This document shows, in pieces, positions 1,628 to 10,844 of a stretch of DNA of 64,000 bases. A program made the translations under genes and the position numbers. The stretch lies in the sequence record OR805295.1; one strand, written 5' to 3'. The notes under the pieces were generated by a model, which saw only the letters and a program-made list of their open reading frames with translations, made no database searches and had not been told where the DNA came from. Numbering within the stretch: position 1 is the stretch's first letter; every line of letters starts with the position of its first letter.

Positions 1628-3118
1628 ATGAAACTATTTGAAGTGTTTACTTTATATGAAGATAAAGCAGAACTGATTGTGAAAAATCAAGGACCCAACC
1701 TCCTTACTGCTGCTAAAAATTATGGATCGAATATTCGTACGGCTGAAGAAATAATGAATGTTCTTAAGCGTGCAGATCCTACATCTAATCAGAAATATTT
1801 GCAATGGATTACTAATAGATTTATTGCAGGTGAATTTAGATTAGAAGATACTAATAGAATAAGGGCAGAACTTATATCATTCGAAAGATATAAACGTGTT
1901 TTACCGAAAAAAGATATAAATCAGTATAAAACACTAGGAGAATTGTATGCAGTAATTGACCCATTAAATGACGCAGCAACAGGCAACGATCTGATTGGTG
2001 TATCTAATAAACGAGTTAAAAAGCATGCATATAATGCCAAACGCCAAGAATTAATTTCGTCTGGTCAAGCAGATGTAATTTATAAAGGCCAAGAAGGAAT
2101 GCTAGTTAATCCCAAAACAGAAGAAGCAGCAATATTTTTCGGTCAAGGAACTAGGTGGTGTACAGCAGCAACTAGTAGTGATAATATGTTTAGTCACTAC
2201 CATAGTCAGGGACCGTTATATACTTGGTTAGGTTCGGATGGATTCAAAGCACAATTCCATTTAGAAACTAATCAATGGATGGATTCAAAAGACGAGCCTT
2301 TAGACAACGCTCAAATGTCTAAGCTATTGTTAATTCCTATAATTAAAAAATTGTACGACGACGGTATAATTAAATCTGAGAAATCACTTGTCGGCGATCG
2401 TGGCGGCTTCGATGACGAATATGATAATAGACTATCGGATGACTATTATTTCGACATGTGGGCTGATCGAAAATACCGTATTAAACGACATATTGAGAAA
2501 CACGGCATGTCTGAGTATTTAATAGATACACTTTCTGTTAAAGATCCTTTATTACCGTTGTTTGTTTTACCAGAACACTCAAAATACCCTGCGTCGAAAT
2601 CACTCGATGATTATTTTTTAAAATTATCCAAAATAGAACCGCTCGACCAATATAAAGAGATAAATGGGTATTTTGAGAGTGATATGTTACTTCGATTAAC
2701 TAGATACCTTGAAGATTCTACAGGGTCTCATTCTAAATCTTTAGATGATGCTGGATTTAATTTTGTTCGTCGATTACTGGACATAGGCGGAAAGGATTTT
2801 GATTTAATAATATCGAACTATCTAAAACATGTAGCTGAGAATTCTAAAACAAAACAATACCTTCTGTCTAATCTTCCGTTAGCTGTTGAGATTGCTAATT
2901 CGATCGAATGGCCAGAACTTATGACAGCAATTGAGCATGAGCTTAGCAATGCTAAAACACCAAAAGAAGAGAACGATGCAATAAAACTAGGCAGTGATTT
3001 AATGTTTAAATCTAATAGCCTGCCTGTATCTAAATGGTTTATTAATTTACTTAAAACTACAGATGCAGGTAAACGATACTTATCATCATTACCTGAGTAT
3101 GACAACACAAAACAATAA
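1628..3118 (+). CDS. Conserved jumbo-phage protein, probably virion/head-internal
   Basis: ORF track 1556; ATG at 1628 (MKLFEVF) follows ACTAAATA at 1597-1604. ADPTSNQKYLQWI and GTRWCTAA...NMFSHY motifs are typical of large-phage hypothetical proteins. Confidence 0.6.
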   Translation: MKLFEVFTLYEDKAELIVKNQGPNLLTAAKNYGSNIRTAEEIMNVLKRADPTSNQKYLQWITNRFIAGEFRLEDTNRIRAELISFERYKRVLPKKDINQYKTLGELYAVIDPLNDAATGNDLIGVSNKRVKKHAYNAKRQELISSGQADVIYKGQEGMLVNPKTEEAAIFFGQGTRWCTAATSSDNMFSHYHSQGPLYTWLGSDGFKAQFHLETNQWMDSKDEPLDNAQMSKLLLIPIIKKLYDDGIIKSEKSLVGDRGGFDDEYDNRLSDDYYFDMWADRKYRIKRHIEKHGMSEYLIDTLSVKDPLLPLFVLPEHSKYPASKSLDDYFLKLSKIEPLDQYKEINGYFESDMLLRLTRYLEDSTGSHSKSLDDAGFNFVRRLLDIGGKDFDLIISNYLKHVAENSKTKQYLLSNLPLAVEIANSIEWPELMTAIEHELSNAKTPKEENDAIKLGSDLMFKSNSLPVSKWFINLLKTTDAGKRYLSSLPEYDNTKQ

Positions 3119-3146
3119 ATACAATTAAAGTTTTGAGGTAAGAATT

Positions 3147-4715
3147 TTGATTAATTATAACAGAACTGCTAAAAAAATATTTTCTGTATTAAAAGGGCAC
3201 AGCTATCGGGTTAAAATGTATGACCTAACAGGCAATGAAGTGATAGACCCGGAAAAAGCTCGTCGATTTTATGTTCAATACCCGAACATGATGATAACAC
3301 TAGATGAAGACACCGGTGAAATTCGTATGAGCAAAAACAATAATATTTCTTTAACTGAATACGAAAGTACATTAGTTCAGTTAAAGAACATAGCAGTGCA
3401 TTACATGCTAAATTTTACCTTGAAAGACTTCGGGAGAGAAATAACACCGAGAGATTTTGCATACCAAGCAAAAGTTAAAAAGGAAAAAGAAATGTCTAAC
3501 GGATCTGTATCTGAATCTATATCTCCTCTGGCTGGTTCTAAAAAAACAAGTTATCAAACAATAGAAAATGTTAAAATACATGTAAAGCATAAGTCACATG
3601 TCGACGAAGAGATTAGGGGAGCTCGTTCTAGAAATATTTCTGCAATTTTTATAGAACACTCGGGAGAAAGGTTTCGTTTTCCTCACAATAACTTAGTTGG
3701 TGCCCGCGCCATGGCAAGACATATACAGCAAGGCGGCAATCAATACGATTCGATTGGTTCTTATATAATAGAAAGCTGTGCTAACTATACTAAGTTAAGA
3801 GAATTTATGAGATATATTCGTTCTAACAATCTTATAACAGAAGATAGCAACGATGTTATTGCTAATATTAAGGAAAGCATAGATAGTATAGCTACAGATT
3901 TAAAACGTCTATCTGGTGTAAATACCTACGGTATAGTAAAATCTAGGATCGAAGAAACGGAAGAAGCAGAATGCGATGTATCTGATGTAGATAAGTTTAA
4001 GGATATGTTTACTATTCGTAAGTTTGATGATAAGTTTACTGATGTTCTTCCTATAGTGAGTAAACTCGTTAAGGAAAAACAATCATATTTAAAGAAAATA
4101 GAAGAAGCAGTTTCTAAACAAATTTATATAGAGTCTATGCCTATTTTAGAAACTAATGCTATAATATATGAAAATCCTAATATTAAGTTAGGACATAGCT
4201 TACAAGAACTTAGTTCTAGAATATTAGAAAACACATTATTAGCTAATTATATTTCGTCAATGGGATCTAAGCTAATAAAAGAAAATACTTTAAATAAATT
4301 CGAATGTTCTATAATTAAATCATTTTTTGAAAACGTTAGTGTTAAAAAAGCAAATACTAATCAAACTAATGGGTTATTTGCAGAATCGATTAACGAATTT
4401 GGGATAAATATTCCTGACTTCCCGGATAATAATCCCTTTAATAAAAATAAAGACAACAAATACAGTAATTCAGATTCAAATTCAGATTCAAATTCAGATT
4501 CAGATTCAGATTCAGATTCAGATTCAGATTCAGATTCAAATTCAGATTTAGATTTAGATAAACACGCATCTGATCAAAAAGTAGATGCAAATGACACTGT
4601 CTCTAAAATTGATTTTATTATAAGCAATAGTCACGGAAGGTATAATGACAGAGAAAAATTACTAAAATTACCAGATGATGTTATTAACAGAATATATTCT
4701 AAAATTGCTAAATAA
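3147..4715 (+). CDS. Conserved hypothetical protein upstream of ssb, with a Ser-Asp repeat tail
   Basis: TTG start with GAGGT SD; 522 aa; SDSDSD tract near the C-terminus. Confidence 0.7.
   Translation: MINYNRTAKKIFSVLKGHSYRVKMYDLTGNEVIDPEKARRFYVQYPNMMITLDEDTGEIRMSKNNNISLTEYESTLVQLKNIAVHYMLNFTLKDFGREITPRDFAYQAKVKKEKEMSNGSVSESISPLAGSKKTSYQTIENVKIHVKHKSHVDEEIRGARSRNISAIFIEHSGERFRFPHNNLVGARAMARHIQQGGNQYDSIGSYIIESCANYTKLREFMRYIRSNNLITEDSNDVIANIKESIDSIATDLKRLSGVNTYGIVKSRIEETEEAECDVSDVDKFKDMFTIRKFDDKFTDVLPIVSKLVKEKQSYLKKIEEAVSKQIYIESMPILETNAIIYENPNIKLGHSLQELSSRILENTLLANYISSMGSKLIKENTLNKFECSIIKSFFENVSVKKANTNQTNGLFAESINEFGINIPDFPDNNPFNKNKDNKYSNSDSNSDSNSDSDSDSDSDSDSDSNSDLDLDKHASDQKVDANDTVSKIDFIISNSHGRYNDREKLLKLPDDVINRIYSKIAK
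4467..4559 (+). repeat. Coding 6-bp tandem repeat (TCAGAT/TCAAAT)n encoding Ser-Asp/Ser-Asn
   Basis: Directly visible, about 15 units. Confidence 0.95.
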
Positions 4716-4795
4716 AATTATTATAAAGATCATTGAAATGGATTCGAAATAAAATTAATTCTGTATACTTTGCATATTACACTAAAAATAAATGG

Positions 4796-4824
4796 TTGAC
4801 AAATAGATAACTGCATTATATAAT
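4796..4824 (+). promoter_or_regulatory. Consensus sigma70 promoter for gp32
   Basis: TTGACA (4796-4801), 17 bp spacer, TATAAT (4819-4824). Confidence 0.9.
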
Positions 4825-4837
4825 TACACCATAACTT

Positions 4838-4881
4838 AGTTTTGCAGCTAACCCGAGCAAAACTGTATTAAAAGGGTTTAG
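4838..4881 (+). promoter_or_regulatory. Predicted H-type RNA pseudoknot in the gp32 mRNA leader
   Basis: S1: AGUUUUGC 4838-45 / GCAAAACU 4857-64. S2: AACCC 4850-54 / GGGUU 4874-78. An A/U-rich stretch follows up to the ATG. Confidence 0.6.
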
Positions 4882-4915
4882 GATAAAATAAAAAAAATAT
4901 TAAGGATAATTCATT

Positions 4916-5902
4916 ATGGCTTCTCTTGCTGAACTACGTCAAAAATTAAAAGATCAAGAAACAAAACGTGGCACAAAATCATCTGGCAGTGCAGATAAAA
5001 GTAATTTCCCATTCTGGGACATGAATGAAAACGACAGTGCTACTGTAAGATTTCTTCCTGATGCAAACACTGATAATACCTTTTTCTGGGTAGAAAAACA
5101 ACAAATTAAAATTCCATTCAGTGGCATTGTAGGTATGAATAGTAAACCTACAGTTGTTACTGTACCGTGTGTAGAAATGTGGGGGGAATCTTGCCCTATT
5201 CATCAAGAAATCCGTCCGTGGTTTAAAGATCCTTCGTTAGAGAAATTAGCGCGTACTTATTGGAAGAAACGTTCTTATATTTTCCAAGGACTTGTTCGTA
5301 AGTCACCCCTTGTAGAACAAGAACTACCGGAGAATCCTATTCGCAAATTTACATTCGGAAGTCAGATTTTTAATCTAGTTAAATCGTCTCTATTAGACCC
5401 CGAAATGGAAAACATTCCCACTGATTATTTAAATGGTACTGATTTCCAGATAACTAAATTAATGAAGGGCCAATATGCCGATTACGCTACATCTAAATGG
5501 GCAAGGAAAGAATCTTCGTTAACTGAAGAAGAATTCCAAGCAATCCAAACATATGGTCTGTATGATTTAAGTAAATTTTTACCTGCTAAACCTGATGCAG
5601 AAGCATTAGCTGCTATATTCGAGATGTTCGAAGAATCAGTAGAAGGTAAAGAATATGATCCGCAGCGTTGGGGGAAATACTATCGCCCTTACGGGGTTGA
5701 AGTTCCTACTAATACTTCCGTAAGTGTACCTGTATCTAAACCAGAACCTAAGACTACGGTATCTAGTTCTTCAGTTATAGAAGACGATAACGATGATCTT
5801 CCTTGGGAAGATACTACTAAACCTGTAGAGCCTGTCAAATCTGCTTCTAATGCGCAAGATATAATTGCGCTCATCCGCGCCCGCCAAAACAGCGGCAACT
5901 AA
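4916..5902 (+). CDS. ssb: Single-stranded DNA-binding protein (T4 gp32-like)
   Basis: VRFLPD...FFW, CVEMWGESCPI Zn region, YADYATSKW, acidic tail; lies upstream of uvsX. Confidence 0.92.
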   Translation: MASLAELRQKLKDQETKRGTKSSGSADKSNFPFWDMNENDSATVRFLPDANTDNTFFWVEKQQIKIPFSGIVGMNSKPTVVTVPCVEMWGESCPIHQEIRPWFKDPSLEKLARTYWKKRSYIFQGLVRKSPLVEQELPENPIRKFTFGSQIFNLVKSSLLDPEMENIPTDYLNGTDFQITKLMKGQYADYATSKWARKESSLTEEEFQAIQTYGLYDLSKFLPAKPDAEALAAIFEMFEESVEGKEYDPQRWGKYYRPYGVEVPTNTSVSVPVSKPEPKTTVSSSSVIEDDNDDLPWEDTTKPVEPVKSASNAQDIIALIRARQNSGN

Positions 5903-5907
5903 ATAGG

Positions 5908-5935
5908 GAGAGGGGATCAGCGATCCCCTCTCTTT
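5908..5935 (+). terminator. Rho-independent terminator after gp32
   Basis: GAGAGGGGATC-AGC-GATCCCCTCTC followed by TTT. Confidence 0.8.
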
Positions 5936-6009
5936 AATATAACCTAAAATAGCCAAAAAGTACAACTACAATGTTGGAAGGACGGCAGTATTATAAAAAA
6001 GGACATTTT

Positions 6010-6255
6010 ATGACAAAACCATTCGATATTTCTAAATTTAGAAAAGATATTACTAAAAGTATCACTGGCATTAGTACAGGATTTAATGACCCAACTATTT
6101 GGATTAGTACCGGCAACTATACTCTTAATTATCTCATTAGTAGCGACTTTAATAAAGGCGTACCTATGGGTAAAGTAACTATGTTTGCTGGCGAGTCGGG
6201 TTGTTTGCCTGAAACTGCTAAAGTGAAAATTAGACTATCTAAGAAGCAATCTTAA
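6010..6255 (+). CDS. uvsX: UvsX/RecA N-extein (64 aa) fused to a 17-aa split-intein N fragment (6202-6252)
   Basis: RecA N-terminus ISTGNYTLNYLIS...GKVTMFAGESG, then CLPETAKVKIRLSKKQS and a stop codon. Confidence 0.92.
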   Translation: MTKPFDISKFRKDITKSITGISTGFNDPTIWISTGNYTLNYLISSDFNKGVPMGKVTMFAGESGCLPETAKVKIRLSKKQS

Positions 6256-6264
6256 CTGTCCAGT

Positions 6265-6304
6265 GTCTCCGTCGAGGATAAATACTTTTATCTAAAACGG
6301 AGAC
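6265..6304 (+). promoter_or_regulatory. SD-sequestering hairpin containing a late promoter, upstream of the endonuclease gene
   Basis: GTCTCCGT 6265-72 pairs with ACGGAGAC 6297-6304, which includes the SD GGAG. Inner stem GATAAA/TTTATC; GATAAATA at 6277-84. Confidence 0.75.
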
Positions 6305-6307
6305 TTT

Positions 6308-7741
6308 ATGGGAAATTACAATGTTCTTTCTACAAAAAACTTTAAGAAGCTATGTAATGAGTTAAACATAGTAACGATATCAGAAAAGTACATTTCTGAT
6401 ATACGTAAGATAGAAGATTCTGCTAAGAGCAAAGTGGATTCTGCATCTCAGCGTATGATATTAACTATGATAACTGTGAAAGTTCCCGACTTATATGATG
6501 CATATAACAGATACTATCAGCTCAGAACAGATGGTATTAGTACAAAAACTCAAGACAGTATTTCTTATATTTTTGGAAAAGACTTCCTCGAATCTGTTAA
6601 TTTACTAATCAGTAATAGATATAAAACTGCATTCCGTAAAGGAATGACAGTGGAAGAGGCATTTATAACACGTAATAAAGACTTTTCCAATAATGGTGTG
6701 TATTATAACCAGATGACTGATAAGCAAAAGAAACGTTTATCATTATTGCTTAGTGTGTATACACCAGAAAGGTTGGAGTTTTATAAAAAGACAATTTCGT
6801 TTTTTATTAAGTTAGATTTGACTAATTATGCAGGAAGAATGAAAAGACTGATGAAACTGGGATCTAGTACGTCTTTATATGCTAGCGTATTACGGTATGG
6901 TAAATCTGTCGGAAAAAGCACACATTCATCTGTATCTGCGGTAAAGAGAAACTATTTGCCTACTTCGATACAATATTGGATGGCAAAGGGGTTTGATGAA
7001 GATACTGCATTAGTGAAGATAAACGAACATCAACAGAAAGCAAGTGCCATGTCTTCCAAAAAACTAAAAGGCACTAGCGAATACTCTGTTCGATCAGTTG
7101 CATATTGGATTAAAAACGGGTATAGCGAAGAAGAGGCAAAAGGGAAAGTATCTAATATACAGAATACTTGGAAAAATGTATCTCAAGAAGAGCGTGATCG
7201 AAGAATAGAATCGTGGATGACTACAATGAGTCTTAAAACAGACGAGGAGAAATCTTTGATAAACCTTAAAAAAACTCACAGCCCGGAAGGGATAATGGCA
7301 AGGACAAATTGCGATTATGATATTGCATTTAAGCAAAGCGTTGATTTTTTTAAGAAACGAAATAATTCTTCTAAAGTATCTCAAGAACTATTTTGGGGAA
7401 TTGCCGAGGATATCGATACCGATGGAGTTTACTTTTCTGAACTAAACTACGAATACCCTGTTATGGGGAAAATAGTAGATTTCTATGATTCTAAAAGCAA
7501 AACAGTAATCGAATTTTATGGAAACTTTTGGCATGCAGATAGTACATATACTGATGACACACTGATATATGGAAAAACTGCTAAAGAAATAAGAGAATCG
7601 GACATTTACAGAGAAACGTTAATTAGATCATCTGATTTGGTTAGTGATTTTATAGTAGTTTGGGAAAAGGACTTTAGGAAGAATCCGAAAGAAACAATTA
7701 AAAATTTAGTTAATATTTTAAATAATAAAAGGAAATTTTAA
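6308..7741 (+). mobile_element. Free-standing homing endonuclease (Vsr/EDxHD/DUF559-like) between the split-intein halves
   Basis: C-terminal IVDFYD...VIEFYGNFWHAD...IVVWEKD; repeated YWxxxG(Y/F)xE(E/D)xA segments; position inside the fractured uvsX. Confidence 0.8.
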
Positions 7742-7744
7742 TAA

Positions 7745-9016
7745 ATGGAATACATCGAAAAGGAAGTAACAGTTAGTGAACTGAAGTCTCTCTACAGTAG
7801 TAATGAATACGAAATTGAGTTAGACACACCAGATGGCTGGCAAAAACTGGGATCTTGGTTCGATAAAGGCCCTCTTAGTATGGTGACGGTAGAAACGCAG
7901 GATGGGTTAGTTACTAGATGTGCAGTAAACCATATGATCGAAGTGGTAGACGGATCGGAAACTTTTTGGACACTTGCAAAAGACTTGTACGAAGGCCAAC
8001 AAGTGCTTACTGTAAACGGTGTCTCAACAATTAGTTCTGTAACTGAAAGTGGCATCGAAGAATGTTTCGATTTCGAAATACTCCACGAAAATCATCGTTA
8101 CTATGGTGATGGATTCTCTTCTCACAATAGTGGCAAATCGTATATAGTATCAGGAAACATTGTAAAAGATGCACAAGAAAAGGGAATTTTTGTTGTATTA
8201 CTTGATTCAGAAAATGCACTCGACGAATCTTGGCTACATGCACTAGGTGTAGACACCGGACCGGAAAAAATGTTACGCATCTCTGTATCGATGATAGATG
8301 ATGTAGCAAAAATTATTAGTGATTTTGTTAAAGATTACAAGACTAATTATGCCGAACTACCTAACAATGATCGACCGAAGGTGCTTTTTGTTATTGACTC
8401 GCTCGGAATGTTATTGACACCAACGGAAACTGCACAATTTCAAAATGGTGATATGAAAGGAGATATGGGCAGGAAAGCAAAACAATTAAAAGCATTGATT
8501 TCTAACTGTACAAATATGTTCGGCAACTTAGACATAGGCCTTGTTTGTACTAACCATACATATGCATCTCAAGATTTATTTCAGCCCGACGCTGTAATTT
8601 CGGGTGGCAGCGGCGCAGTCTATGCCGCGTCAATTGTAGTGGCAATGCAAAAGTTAAAGTTAAAAGAAGACGAAGCAGGTAATAAAATTTCTGAAGTAGC
8701 TGGTATTCGTGCAGTATGTAAAGTTGTGAAATCTCGATATGCAAAGCCGTTTGAGACAGTAAAAGTAAATATTCCATATGATACAGGTATGAGTCCGATA
8801 TCGGGTCTATTTGACTTGTTTGAAAAAACAGGTAAACTTGTAAAACAAGGCAATAGATATAAGTACATAACCAAAGATGGTACCGAAATGCTGTATTATA
8901 GGAAAGAATGGAATGATTACGATAAACTAAAAGTAATTATGAATGAATTTACAGACGAAGACCTAGGCAATGTCGTAGAAGTGGAAGAGGGTCATTTAGA
9001 AGAGTTCGATGAATAA
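7745..9016 (+). CDS. uvsX: Split-intein C fragment (128 aa, 7745-8128) fused to the UvsX/RecA C-extein
   Basis: Intein blocks CAVNH, CFDFEI and SSHN, then +1 Ser: SGKS..., LLDSENALD, FVIDSLG, ISGGSG and KSRY RecA motifs. Confidence 0.93.
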   Translation: MEYIEKEVTVSELKSLYSSNEYEIELDTPDGWQKLGSWFDKGPLSMVTVETQDGLVTRCAVNHMIEVVDGSETFWTLAKDLYEGQQVLTVNGVSTISSVTESGIEECFDFEILHENHRYYGDGFSSHNSGKSYIVSGNIVKDAQEKGIFVVLLDSENALDESWLHALGVDTGPEKMLRISVSMIDDVAKIISDFVKDYKTNYAELPNNDRPKVLFVIDSLGMLLTPTETAQFQNGDMKGDMGRKAKQLKALISNCTNMFGNLDIGLVCTNHTYASQDLFQPDAVISGGSGAVYAASIVVAMQKLKLKEDEAGNKISEVAGIRAVCKVVKSRYAKPFETVKVNIPYDTGMSPISGLFDLFEKTGKLVKQGNRYKYITKDGTEMLYYRKEWNDYDKLKVIMNEFTDEDLGNVVEVEEGHLEEFDE

Positions 9017-10844
9017 ATTATGCGAAACAGATCGTATTAATATTATCAAATTACACTTCGATGATTTAAAATCTGTATCTGAATTAAAGAAAATATATGG
9101 AGTCTCTTATGATGTCATTAAAACCATCATAAGAGATGAAACGAATCGTCTGCCGTTGCAAGAAACTGATATAAAAATTTTGAAATTTAAAAAACTTGTT
9201 TCAAAGGAGTTGTTATTTGAATTACATGTAATTAAAAAACAATCATTTAATGAAATAAGAAAAACTTATAAGATTAATGAACTTCATTTAAAACAAGTGT
9301 TTAATGATTATGGAATACCAATTGAAAAGTGTTTATATACTGCTACTAACAAGAAGCGTAAAACAAAAAAGCCTGAAGATTTTACTAAAGACTTTTTCGA
9401 ACACTTAGTATATAACGAAAGACGAACAATTAGTTGGATAAAAAATAATTATAACTTTAATTTTGAAGAACTAAAACATCATTTAACACATTTAAAAATC
9501 GATTATACTAATTCGTTGCCACCTGCTGTAAAACATCAACAAGATAAAATATCTAGAGAAACTCTAGCAGAAGAATTAAAAATTAAATCTATTGTTGATA
9601 TAATAAATGAATACGGAATTTCTAGAACTTATGTAGAAAGCGTTATAAAAGAATACAATATACAGTATTTTACAAAACCGAAACATTCTATATTAAGTGG
9701 TAAAGAATCAGAAATTTACCGGATGTATTATGATGAATGTATGACTACATACCAAATAGCAGAAAATTTAGGAGTATGTCAATACACCATATGGAAAATA
9801 ATGGCAGATAACGGATGGAAAACACGAGAACCGATTAAAAAAATTGATTTGATTTGGAATGATATAAAAGAAGAAGTTGTTAAATTAATAGACAACGGTT
9901 ATACATTAGCTGCTTTATGTGAAAAATACGAAATAACATCTATTACTGAAAAGTTAATAGAAGAAGGTATAAAATATACAAAGGGAAATATTTCTTCTGG
10001 TCATGCAGAAATATCTGAATATGTGCGTTCATTGGGATTTAATGTAATCGACAATGATCGTACTATTATATTTCCGCGAGAAATTGATATTTTTATTCCC
10101 GAACTTAACATAGGAATAGAATACAACGGATTATATTTTCATAGCACACGAACAGAAGGAAATGTAACAAAGCATAGAGAAAAATATAGCATATGTAAAC
10201 AAAAAGGTATTCGTTTAATACAAATTTTTGAAGATGAATTTATTCATAAGAAAGAACTAGTAAAGAGAAAATTAGCGCACATTTTAGGAAAATCTAATAA
10301 TAAATGTTATGCAAGGAATTGTATAGTTAAAGAAATATCGGTAGCAGACAAACGAAATTTCTTTAAAAAATATCACATACAAGAAGATTCTGCATCCTCG
10401 TATGCATATGGATTATATTATGATAATGAATTAGTTTGTGCTATGTCTTTTCTTAAAAAGAAGAAATGTACAGAACTAGTTAGATATGCATCTTCTATGC
10501 ACGTGGTCGGCGGATTTTCTAAGTTGTTGAAATATTGCATTAATAATAACAAAATAGATGTTATAAACACATATGCTGATCTCAGATGGTCGAATCCGAC
10601 AAATAATGTATATGTAAACAATGGGTTTGATATACTGTATGAGACTGATTTTAATTACACTTATGTGAGTAAAGAGGATTTTTCAAAAAGGCTTAATAGG
10701 CAAAAATTTATGAAACACAAGTTGAAAAACATTTTATCAGATTTCGATAAATCATTAACAGAAGAAGAGAATATGAAAAATAATGGATTTTATCGAGTAT
10801 ACGATGCTGGCCATTTAAAATTGCAATATAAGGTTAATAAATGA
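9009..10844 (+). mobile_element. Putative homing endonuclease (Hef-like, PD-(D/E)xK) with multiple N-terminal HTH-like repeats
   Basis: EIDIFIPELNIGIEYNGLYFHS...LIQIFEDEF, then a YARNC...HIQ...VRYAS...GGFSKLL...YDAG module. Confidence 0.7.

Follow-up and report, generated by a model that had tools for sequence, protein, structure and literature searches.

The first 64 kb of the genome of Pseudomonas phage Paride (OR805295.1), a PA5oct-like jumbo phage of the genus Wroclawvirus, were analyzed and are referred to below as the window. In this window, the gene encoding the recombinase UvsX is fractured over three open reading frames (ORFs) of the same strand, located downstream from the gp32 gene for a single-stranded DNA-binding protein (SSB; positions 4916-5902). 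ORF1 (start at 5971 or 6010, end at 6255, plus strand; MTKPF...VTMFAGESG/CLPETAKVKIRLSKKQS followed by the stop) consists of the uvsX N-extein (ExtN; 6010-6201, plus strand, 64 codons, MTKPF...FAGESG), which ends with the first half of the Walker A motif, and of the N-terminal fragment of an intein (IntN; 6202-6255, plus strand, 17 codons and a TAA stop). A free-standing homing endonuclease gene (HEG; 6308-7741, plus strand, 477 aa) follows, its Shine-Dalgarno sequence and AUG being covered by an RNA hairpin (6259-6312, plus strand). ORF2 (7745-9016, plus strand, 423 aa) combines the C-terminal intein fragment (IntC; 7745-8128, plus strand, 128 codons or 384 nt, MEYIEK...GDGFSSHN) with the uvsX C-extein (ExtC; 8129-9016, plus strand, 295 codons and a stop), the first residue of which is the serine (Ser+1) of SGKSYIVSG.... 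The insert at 6202-8128 (1927 bp) lies between the GGN (Gly) and AGY (Ser) codons of the Walker A motif GESG/SGKS. A second HEG, encoding 611 aa (9009-10844), overlaps the uvsX stop codon. An earlier note on this DNA had described a uvsX/recA gene fractured at the P-loop by an atypically split intein, with ORF1 ending in FAGESG/CLPETAKVKIRLSKKQS and ORF2 opening with intein residues followed by SGKS; the ORF coordinates agree with this layout and with the proposed lengths of 17 and 128 residues for IntN and IntC.

Profile searches identified the two outer ORFs as parts of one UvsX. Positions 12-84 of PHROG 97 (UvsX) matched ORF1 (E = 1.2e-13) and positions 83-445 matched residues 128-396 of ORF2 (E = 1.7e-46), the two pieces together spanning the profile on either side of GESG/SGKS. 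Pfam RecA matched residues 125-350 of ORF2 (E = 2.2e-10), and the same Pfam search of the three ORFs returned no match for ORF1 or for the 477-aa ORF. The split of PHROG 97 between the ORFs and the RecA match substantiate the fracture claimed by the earlier note. The gene order, gp32 and uvsX followed by genes annotated as UvsY-like and UvsW in PAC2, fits the same assignment. The ORF1 product is annotated from position 5971 (94 aa) in the Paride and Cassandra records and from position 6010 (81 aa) in the other records. The ATG at 6010 is the likelier start: AAGGA is present 6 nt upstream, and an intein-free UvsX encoded by related contigs (P0001; see below) starts there, which gives an ExtN of 64 aa and an IntN of 17 aa. 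ORF2 starts 3 nt past the stop codon of the HEG and is preceded by AGGA 11 nt upstream. The product of the ORF2 equivalent is flagged "ESI-MS/MS" in the RefSeq record of phage PA5oct, indicating that the C-terminal piece is expressed.

The residues expected of an intein are present in both fragments. The first residue of IntN is a cysteine (6202-6204), located immediately after GESG and aligned with position 1 of the intein VidaL and of contiguous homologues. In an alignment of 127 homologues, the near-invariant columns were H63, C107, D109, F110, S126, H127, N128, and S129. The block motifs CAVNH (block B, His63), CFDFE (block F, Cys107 and Asp109), and SSHN/S (block G, His127, Asn128, and Ser+1) fall in columns conserved in at least 90% of these sequences, so that the block residues CAVNH, CFDFEI, and SSHN picked out in the earlier note are genuine. 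A recount also agreed with its charges: IntN contains five basic residues and one acidic residue (net +4), and the first 30 residues of IntC include nine acidic versus two basic residues, a charge complementarity that also exists in VidaL and may favor association of the fragments. IntN is carried by a separate polypeptide and IntC has its own ATG 1.5 kb downstream, as in atypically split inteins. The IntC sequence was 100% identical in 11 records of PA5oct-like phages.

Comparison with structures placed this intein in a known family. IntC matched PDB entry 6vgv, VidaL, over 127 of the 128 N-terminal residues of ORF2 (E = 2.5e-35), and the next PDB matches were other mini-inteins with E values above 0.006. 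The whole fused VidaL chain (ESG-ALPKEAVVQIRLTKKG-MIEEKKVTV...IVSHA-SGK) was aligned through P0016, a naturally contiguous homologue from the database. IntN of the window aligned with (C)LPKEAVVQIRLTKKG of VidaL in 6vgv (10 of 16 residues identical, 62.5%) and with contiguous inteins, such as P0016 (CLPKSAKIKVRLTKKE...); the identity of IntC to VidaL was 52%. Since the VidaL chain is flanked by ESG and SGK, it occupies the same Walker A junction as the intein of the window. The split positions are aligned as well (...RLTKKG/MIEEKKVTV in VidaL versus ...RLSKKQS, stop, and MEYIEKEVTV in the window). As judged from these alignments, the intein of the window is an allele of the known atypically split VidaL-type intein, with ~50 to 60% identity, and its break in the loop after the second β-strand corresponds to the S1 atypical split site, as assigned for VidaL in PMC13014065. 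The resemblance to VidaL suggested by the earlier note was thus correct with respect to homology and site, whereas "closely" overstated the degree of identity. We infer that the host protein of VidaL itself is UvsX, from 76 split and 38 contiguous UvsX homologues sharing the junction.

VidaL, known from PDB entries 6vgv and 6vgw and from its use in protein semisynthesis and live-cell labeling, is reportedly derived from a lake metagenome and, to our knowledge, has no known phage or host. The label UvsX-2 used in the earlier note may refer to the crystallized VidaL. Both inteins are split after the ...RL(T/S)KK segment of IntN, and Cys1, Ser+1, and the terminal His-Asn are common to both. The start of IntC is acidic in both, and the charges of IntN are +4/-1 in VidaL and +5/-1 in the window. 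IntN and IntC of the window are longer by one and five residues, respectively. In contrast to VidaL, the element of the window resides in a cultured phage with Pseudomonas aeruginosa PAO1 as the host, together with a known endonuclease gene and an empty-site allele. VidaL has a 16-aa IntN, is split at S1 after β-strand 2, and splices with a half-life of ~1 min (PMC13014065); splicing has been measured for VidaL, whereas it is predicted from sequence for the allele of the window.

The best database match to ORF2 was the intein-free UvsX P0001 (359 aa), which reads ...FAGESGSGKSYIV... at the Walker A motif. This protein is 100% identical to ExtN plus ExtC, residues 1-64 corresponding to the N-extein and residues 65-359 to the C-extein, joined as GESG/SGKS. 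The GESGSGKS motif that the earlier note had proposed for the rejoined protein is therefore the motif encoded by P0001. P0001 was encoded on six contigs, five of which were analyzed (L001-L005); they originate from five separate samples (ERZ23500641, SRR22477850, ERZ23499797, SRR36222920, and SRR8379594), and one is a 285-kb scaffold. These empty-site contigs share the gene order of the window (gp32, uvsX, and the 611-aa HEG) and are 98 to 99.6% identical to the window on both flanks, the alignment jumping from 6201 to 8129. The empty-site sequence around the junction is GAGTCGGGA/AGYGGTAAA. Removal of the intein leaves an intact, colinear host protein, and the empty site is exact to the base at the DNA level. 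The tryptic peptide predicted to span the spliced junction is ...VTMFAGESGSGK. Two synonymous differences flank the junction, at 6201 (T in the window, A in the empty alleles) and 8134 (C and T, respectively), and separate the window and PA5oct from all five empty alleles. Clustering of these differences at the junction is unlikely at the background divergence (Fisher P = 0.002 to 0.012), and such differences are what co-conversion during homing would be expected to leave.

Joining of the exons at the RNA level, by a group I intron, by other RNA splicing, or by bypass, would make the intein-like residues incidental. Covariance models can miss large ORF-bearing introns, which leaves some room for this explanation, but searches of positions 5900-9100 against Rfam retrieved no family or intron at E ≤ 1 on either strand. 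In addition, the coding sequence flanking the HEG amounts to a complete HINT domain, homologous to a solved active intein, and contiguous in-frame versions of the intein occupy the same codon, whereas an intron would not need these residues. We therefore give almost no credence to RNA-level joining, which the earlier note had named as a refuting outcome and which found no support.

The fracture was present in all 10 distinct PA5oct-like isolates (99.4 to 100% identity), which include phages isolated in Switzerland, Thailand, Japan, and Spain; no country is stated for PA5oct and MIJ3 in their records. Polymorphism was counted in these 10 isolates. The uvsX exons contained 31 polymorphic codons, 11 in the N-extein and 20 in the C-extein, and all 31 changes were synonymous. 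The synonymous-to-nonsynonymous counts were 24:3 in gp32 and 23:11 in the neighboring 611-aa HEG. No frameshift or stop codon was found in the uvsX exons of any isolate. Since the exon changes are all synonymous, the fractured uvsX appears to be under strong purifying selection, and such selection on a UvsX broken in its Walker A motif makes sense only if splicing restores the P-loop. This result bears on the possibility that the fracture inactivated uvsX, the ORFs being nonspliced remnants in a phage that uses the host RecA or another recombinase. In keeping with inactivation, the small N-terminal piece carries no proteomic flag in the PA5oct record, and splicing is a prediction. However, the 31:0 ratio and the uninterrupted exons are not those of a remnant, all catalytic positions of the intein are intact, the C-terminal piece is expressed, and the homologous VidaL splices with the short half-life quoted above (PMC13014065). 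Inactivation is therefore extremely unlikely.

The 477-aa protein encoded between the two halves of uvsX has a helical N-terminal region, in which YW.K.G.S.EEA modules are repeated, and ends with a Vsr-like nuclease domain (approximately residues 350-477). Comparison with 14 homologues (27 to 42% identity) revealed seven invariant positions, E382, D391, E402, G405, H409, D432, and W452. The protein contains the motif VDFYD..IEFYGNFWH..D..R..VWE, for which the homologue set shows VDFYD, IEFYGDFWH, D..R, and VWE; the catalytic-motif residues D391 (VDFYD), E402 (IEF), W408-H409 (FWH), and D432 are invariant or nearly so. In Dassa et al. 2009 (PMC2677866), the signature of Vsr-like HEGs is given as a catalytic Asp, Phe-Trp-His, and Asp plus an extra invariant Glu, to which D391, H409, D432, and E402 correspond. 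A Foldseek search with the full-length model was dominated by irrelevant helical matches, and the nuclease domain alone was used instead. With the domain-only AlphaFold model (pLDDT 95.7), the top matches were the Escherichia coli Vsr protein (1cw0, probability 0.90, TM score 0.51; 1vsr, probability 0.87; TM scores of ~0.5 and E values of 0.12 to 0.15) and other Vsr-fold nucleases, short of formal significance. Among relatives of the HEG, Pfam matched MTES_1575 in three and DUF559 in two, and two sources name relatives "very short patch repair endonuclease." Assignment to the Vsr-like family is thus well supported by the motifs and moderately supported by the predicted fold. In the three metagenomic loci that were checked (L009, L020, and L021), a HEG homologue was located between the UvsX halves, preceded by an N-terminal piece of 77 to 82 aa ending in CLPE... 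and followed by a UvsX C-terminal piece of ~425 aa. Since this was the case in all three loci, the intein and the endonuclease travel together.

The 611-aa HEG adjoining uvsX could in principle mobilize the region, the 477-aa ORF being a passenger or inactive. The 611-aa product is a strong match to a homing endonuclease family (phrog_3339, E = 3e-95) and abuts uvsX, whereas the 477-aa ORF has no Pfam match. Against this possibility, genomes with and without the intein carry the 611-aa gene at equal diversity, and this gene therefore explains neither the presence or absence of the insert nor the low diversity confined to 6202-8128 (see below). In unrelated phages, moreover, split UvsX inteins are accompanied by homologues of the 477-aa protein and have no 611-aa gene beside them. 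Mobilization by the 611-aa HEG is thus very unlikely. The 611-aa protein itself combines helix-turn-helix modules with an MTES_1575-like nuclease, and its gene, found in intein-bearing and intein-free genomes alike, has the lowest GC content of the region (27.1%) and is under relaxed constraint.

The insert is far less diverse than the gene that it interrupts. Two segregating sites were found in 1927 nt of the insert, versus 31 in 1080 nt of the exons, a ~28-fold difference (Fisher P = 2.8e-12). In a tree of the 3.7-kb flank to the right of the insert, the intein-free contigs nested among the intein-bearing isolates at three places. For example, the intein-free contig L002 differed from the intein-bearing isolate Callisto at 5 of 3690 sites, whereas Callisto and PA5oct, which both bear the intein, differed at 46 sites. 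Among database relatives, the 12 closest UvsX exteins (71 to 100% identity) were all intein-free, the closest intein-bearing UvsX outside the group having an extein with 70.8% identity. Low diversity, nesting in the flank tree, and the intein-free state of the closest relatives together indicate a recent spread of the element after its transfer into an intein-free lineage from a distant donor that has not been sampled. This spread seems to have crossed the backgrounds of one recombining phage species. This pattern is the expected behavior of an active homing element and points, at the level of sequence, to an element that is working and has recently homed.

The opposite direction of change, with an element that is old in the lineage and was lost precisely in some genomes, would make the intein-free allele the derived one. 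A presence/absence polymorphism alone does not give the direction, all 10 cultured isolates carry the element whereas only metagenome contigs lack it, and the junction-proximal synonymous differences could equally result from co-conversion from an intein-free donor during loss. However, an old, vertically inherited insert should match the exons in synonymous diversity, which is not what was observed (2/1927 nt versus 31/1080 nt), and the element is absent from the 12 nearest relatives of this UvsX, the least similar of which is 71% identical. The three placements of the intein-free genomes in the flank tree would also need repeated precise losses. We consider this scenario unlikely. Intein-free PA5oct-like genomes were found only among metagenome assemblies, every cultured isolate bearing the element; sampling, isolation on PAO1, or an advantage conferred by the element may be the cause of this pattern.

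Together, these results make it very probable that positions 6202-8128 represent a mobile element of composite nature, located in the P-loop codons of uvsX, in which an intein is split by a free-standing Vsr-like HEG and which trans-splices and homes. According to this model, three proteins would be made: ExtN(64)-IntN(17), the endonuclease, and IntC(128)-ExtC(295). IntN would dock onto IntC, thereby completing the HINT fold. Formation of a thioester at Cys1 would be followed by transfer of the N-extein to Ser+1, cyclization of Asn128, and an O-to-N shift leading to a peptide bond. The product would be a 359-aa UvsX with an intact GESGSGKS Walker A motif, as encoded directly by the intein-free relatives. 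During coinfection, the endonuclease would cut the intein-free uvsX, and repair would copy in the whole 1927-bp element. The fracture may in addition have been put to use, UvsX being active only after its separately translated halves meet and splice, which would give the phage a delay in, or a conditional switch for, recombination-dependent replication. Redox state at Cys1, temperature, or DNA damage might then act as the switch conditions. We regard this proposal as speculative and doubtful.

Several observations nonetheless weigh against a composite element that splices and homes. Formation of spliced UvsX is predicted, as are the activity and the target of the endonuclease. The match to the Vsr fold falls short of formal significance, with Foldseek E values of 0.06 to 0.15 and, for a profile of HEG homologues searched against the PDB, an E value of ~2 for Vsr chains, albeit in the correct region; the 477-aa HEG itself is the ORF with no match in Pfam. 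The only two polymorphisms of this gene are nonsynonymous singletons, and selection on it therefore cannot be judged. No donor was found, the closest intein outside the phage group being 57 to 61% identical. The low diversity of the insert could also be due in part to one recent acquisition, after which the flanks recombined, and not to repeated homing. Finally, motifs of the TATAAATA type, considered below for the hairpin preceding the HEG, were not enriched in the window, with 5 occurrences on the plus strand and 7 on the minus strand versus ~10 expected per strand by our own estimate for the base composition of the window.

The 52-nt spacer preceding the HEG folds into a hairpin with a minimum free energy of -24.4 kcal/mol (z = -4.5), none of 200 shuffled sequences being as stable. 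The main stem pairs 6265-6272 with 6297-6304, its 3′ arm contains GGAG (6299-6302), and the outer stem reaches the AUG. Nonhomologous hairpins were present at the same place before the HEG in L009, L020, and L021. Dassa et al. (PMC2677866) report hairpins upstream of the endonuclease for 15 of 16 fractured loci and link them to its translational repression. By burying the ribosome-binding site, the hairpin of the window probably holds down translation of the HEG. Its loop contains GATAAATA (6277-6284), and two of the three metagenomic hairpins contain the exact TATAAATA. A role of the loop as a late promoter in Paride was considered and dropped; we make no promoter claim for GATAAATA because TATAAATA is not enriched in the window. 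A scan for sigma-70 promoters performed no better than on shuffled sequences (16 found versus 12.9 expected), and a scan of the plus strand detected no terminator-like site inside the element. The GC content of the insert (34.4%) gives no sign of a foreign origin when compared with the window mean (33.2%, standard deviation 1.9).

Classification of the 126 best UvsX matches by intein state yielded 76 IntC-ExtC proteins, with an IntC of mostly 122 to 128 aa, 38 proteins with a contiguous intein of 133 to 156 aa at the same codon, and 12 intein-free proteins. This kind of gene is therefore abundant in metagenomes, and the locus of the window adds a member rather than a new kind. Naturally contiguous inteins at this site include those of P0004, P0016, P0058, P0074, and gp204 of Salicola phage SCTP-2, and both P0074 and SCTP-2 gp204 contain a second intein at ISGG/C...HN/SG. 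The SCTP-2 gene 204 (L008 2743-4713; MF360958.1 202685-204655), annotated as a hypothetical protein, encodes a 656-aa UvsX with two contiguous inteins, one in the P-loop (GDSG/C...SHN/SGKS) and one at ISGG/C...SHN/SGQ. Some relatives have an even shorter IntN than the window. In L021 (2705-2938; ENA ERZ27289132 k119_124025), the predicted IntN contains 13 residues (CLPETAKVKIRIK followed by a stop) and is identical to the window IntN over the first 11 residues, and a predicted IntN of 15 residues is present in the fractured uvsX locus of L020 (2700-2939). The shortest IntN characterized so far has 15 residues (PMC10189870), and the 13-aa IntN of L021 would be a record if active.

The locus is organized like the fractured genes described in 2009 by Dassa et al. 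(PMC2677866), who counted eight enzyme types fractured in this manner. Features in common with these loci, as described there, are two halves on the same strand whose intein fragments, IntN and IntC, are separated by a free-standing Vsr-like HEG, a phage gene of DNA metabolism as the setting, a hairpin with a TATAAATA-like loop over the ribosome-binding site of the HEG, and an end of the HEG that adjoins the start of the downstream half. The parallel with fractured genes drawn in the earlier note from the endonuclease gene between the halves therefore holds. The host genes named in the relevant passage of that paper differ (gp41, IMPDH, DnaE, NrdA, NrdJ, ligase, and terminase), UvsX appearing there only as a neighboring gene. 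The loci described there are marine reads of the GOS data set, whereas the locus of the window is found in complete genomes of isolates.

Another replication gene is fractured in the same genus. In phage MIJ3 (Imam et al. 2019, PMC6892783), PolB is interrupted by a split intein and an HNH endonuclease (orf153-155), block A of this intein beginning with Ser. The motifs of the MIJ3 PolB intein were absent from the 64-kb window. The MIJ3 split intein, too, has a contiguous relative in Salicola phage SCTP-2, whose PolB mini-intein resembles it, and the two jumbo-phage groups thus share relatives of both inteins. AceL-TerL, GOS-TerL, and PolB16 resemble the intein of the window in having a short IntN (15 to 37 aa), a long IntC, and phage-type genes as hosts. 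All three differ in their host proteins; AceL-TerL and GOS-TerL are split at the S2 site after helix α1, and PolB16 is cysteine-less. None of these three was detected as a relative of the window intein.

The intein was unannotated in all the GenBank records examined, in which the pieces are called "UvsX-like recombinase," "RecA-like protein," "structural protein," or "hypothetical protein." The MIJ3 paper (PMC6892783) reports the PolB split intein and does not mention recA or uvsX, neither the PA5oct omics paper nor the Paride paper mentions an intein or UvsX, and full-text literature searches retrieved no description of this locus. As far as we could establish, VidaL-type inteins are otherwise known from sequence data that have not been linked to a phage or host. 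The novelty lies in the setting, namely, a cultivable phage-host system with a natural empty allele and population signs of recent spread. VidaL-type inteins are valued as tools because the front half is short enough for chemical synthesis, and the allele described here is carried by phages of P. aeruginosa PAO1 that are well studied and can be cultivated (Paride, PA5oct, MIJ3, and others). It offers a natural variant pair, with a 17-aa IntN and 52 to 62% identity to VidaL, for comparisons of speed and orthogonality, and a genetic system for evaluating the cost and benefit of an intein in the ATP loop of a recombinase. The intein-free and intein-bearing genomes form a natural before-and-after pair, with ~99% identity and signs of an ongoing sweep, for studying the homing of a fractured gene. 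If our interpretation is correct, cultures of these phages would for the first time allow the spread of an atypically split intein and its endonuclease between cocirculating alleles to be followed. A delay or switch acting on UvsX could, if real, be relevant to a phage with the known ability to replicate in dormant hosts. For annotation, the two UvsX-like ORFs should be joined and the intein and endonuclease named.

Upstream from uvsX, the region 2600-4915, which spans two tandem structural-protein genes of ~496 aa each, was highly variable among the 10 isolates, with 410 variable alignment columns in 2316 nt versus ~2 to 3 per 100 nt elsewhere. This variability may correspond to mosaicism or to an alignment artifact. 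At 4476-4537, the window differs from the metagenome contigs by an indel or a repeat. A palindrome with a perfect 11-bp stem (GAGAGGGGATC...GATCCCCTCTC, 7 GC pairs) is located at 5908-5932, between gp32 and uvsX; it scored as terminator-like on the minus strand and is followed by a T-rich tail in the plus-strand orientation as well.

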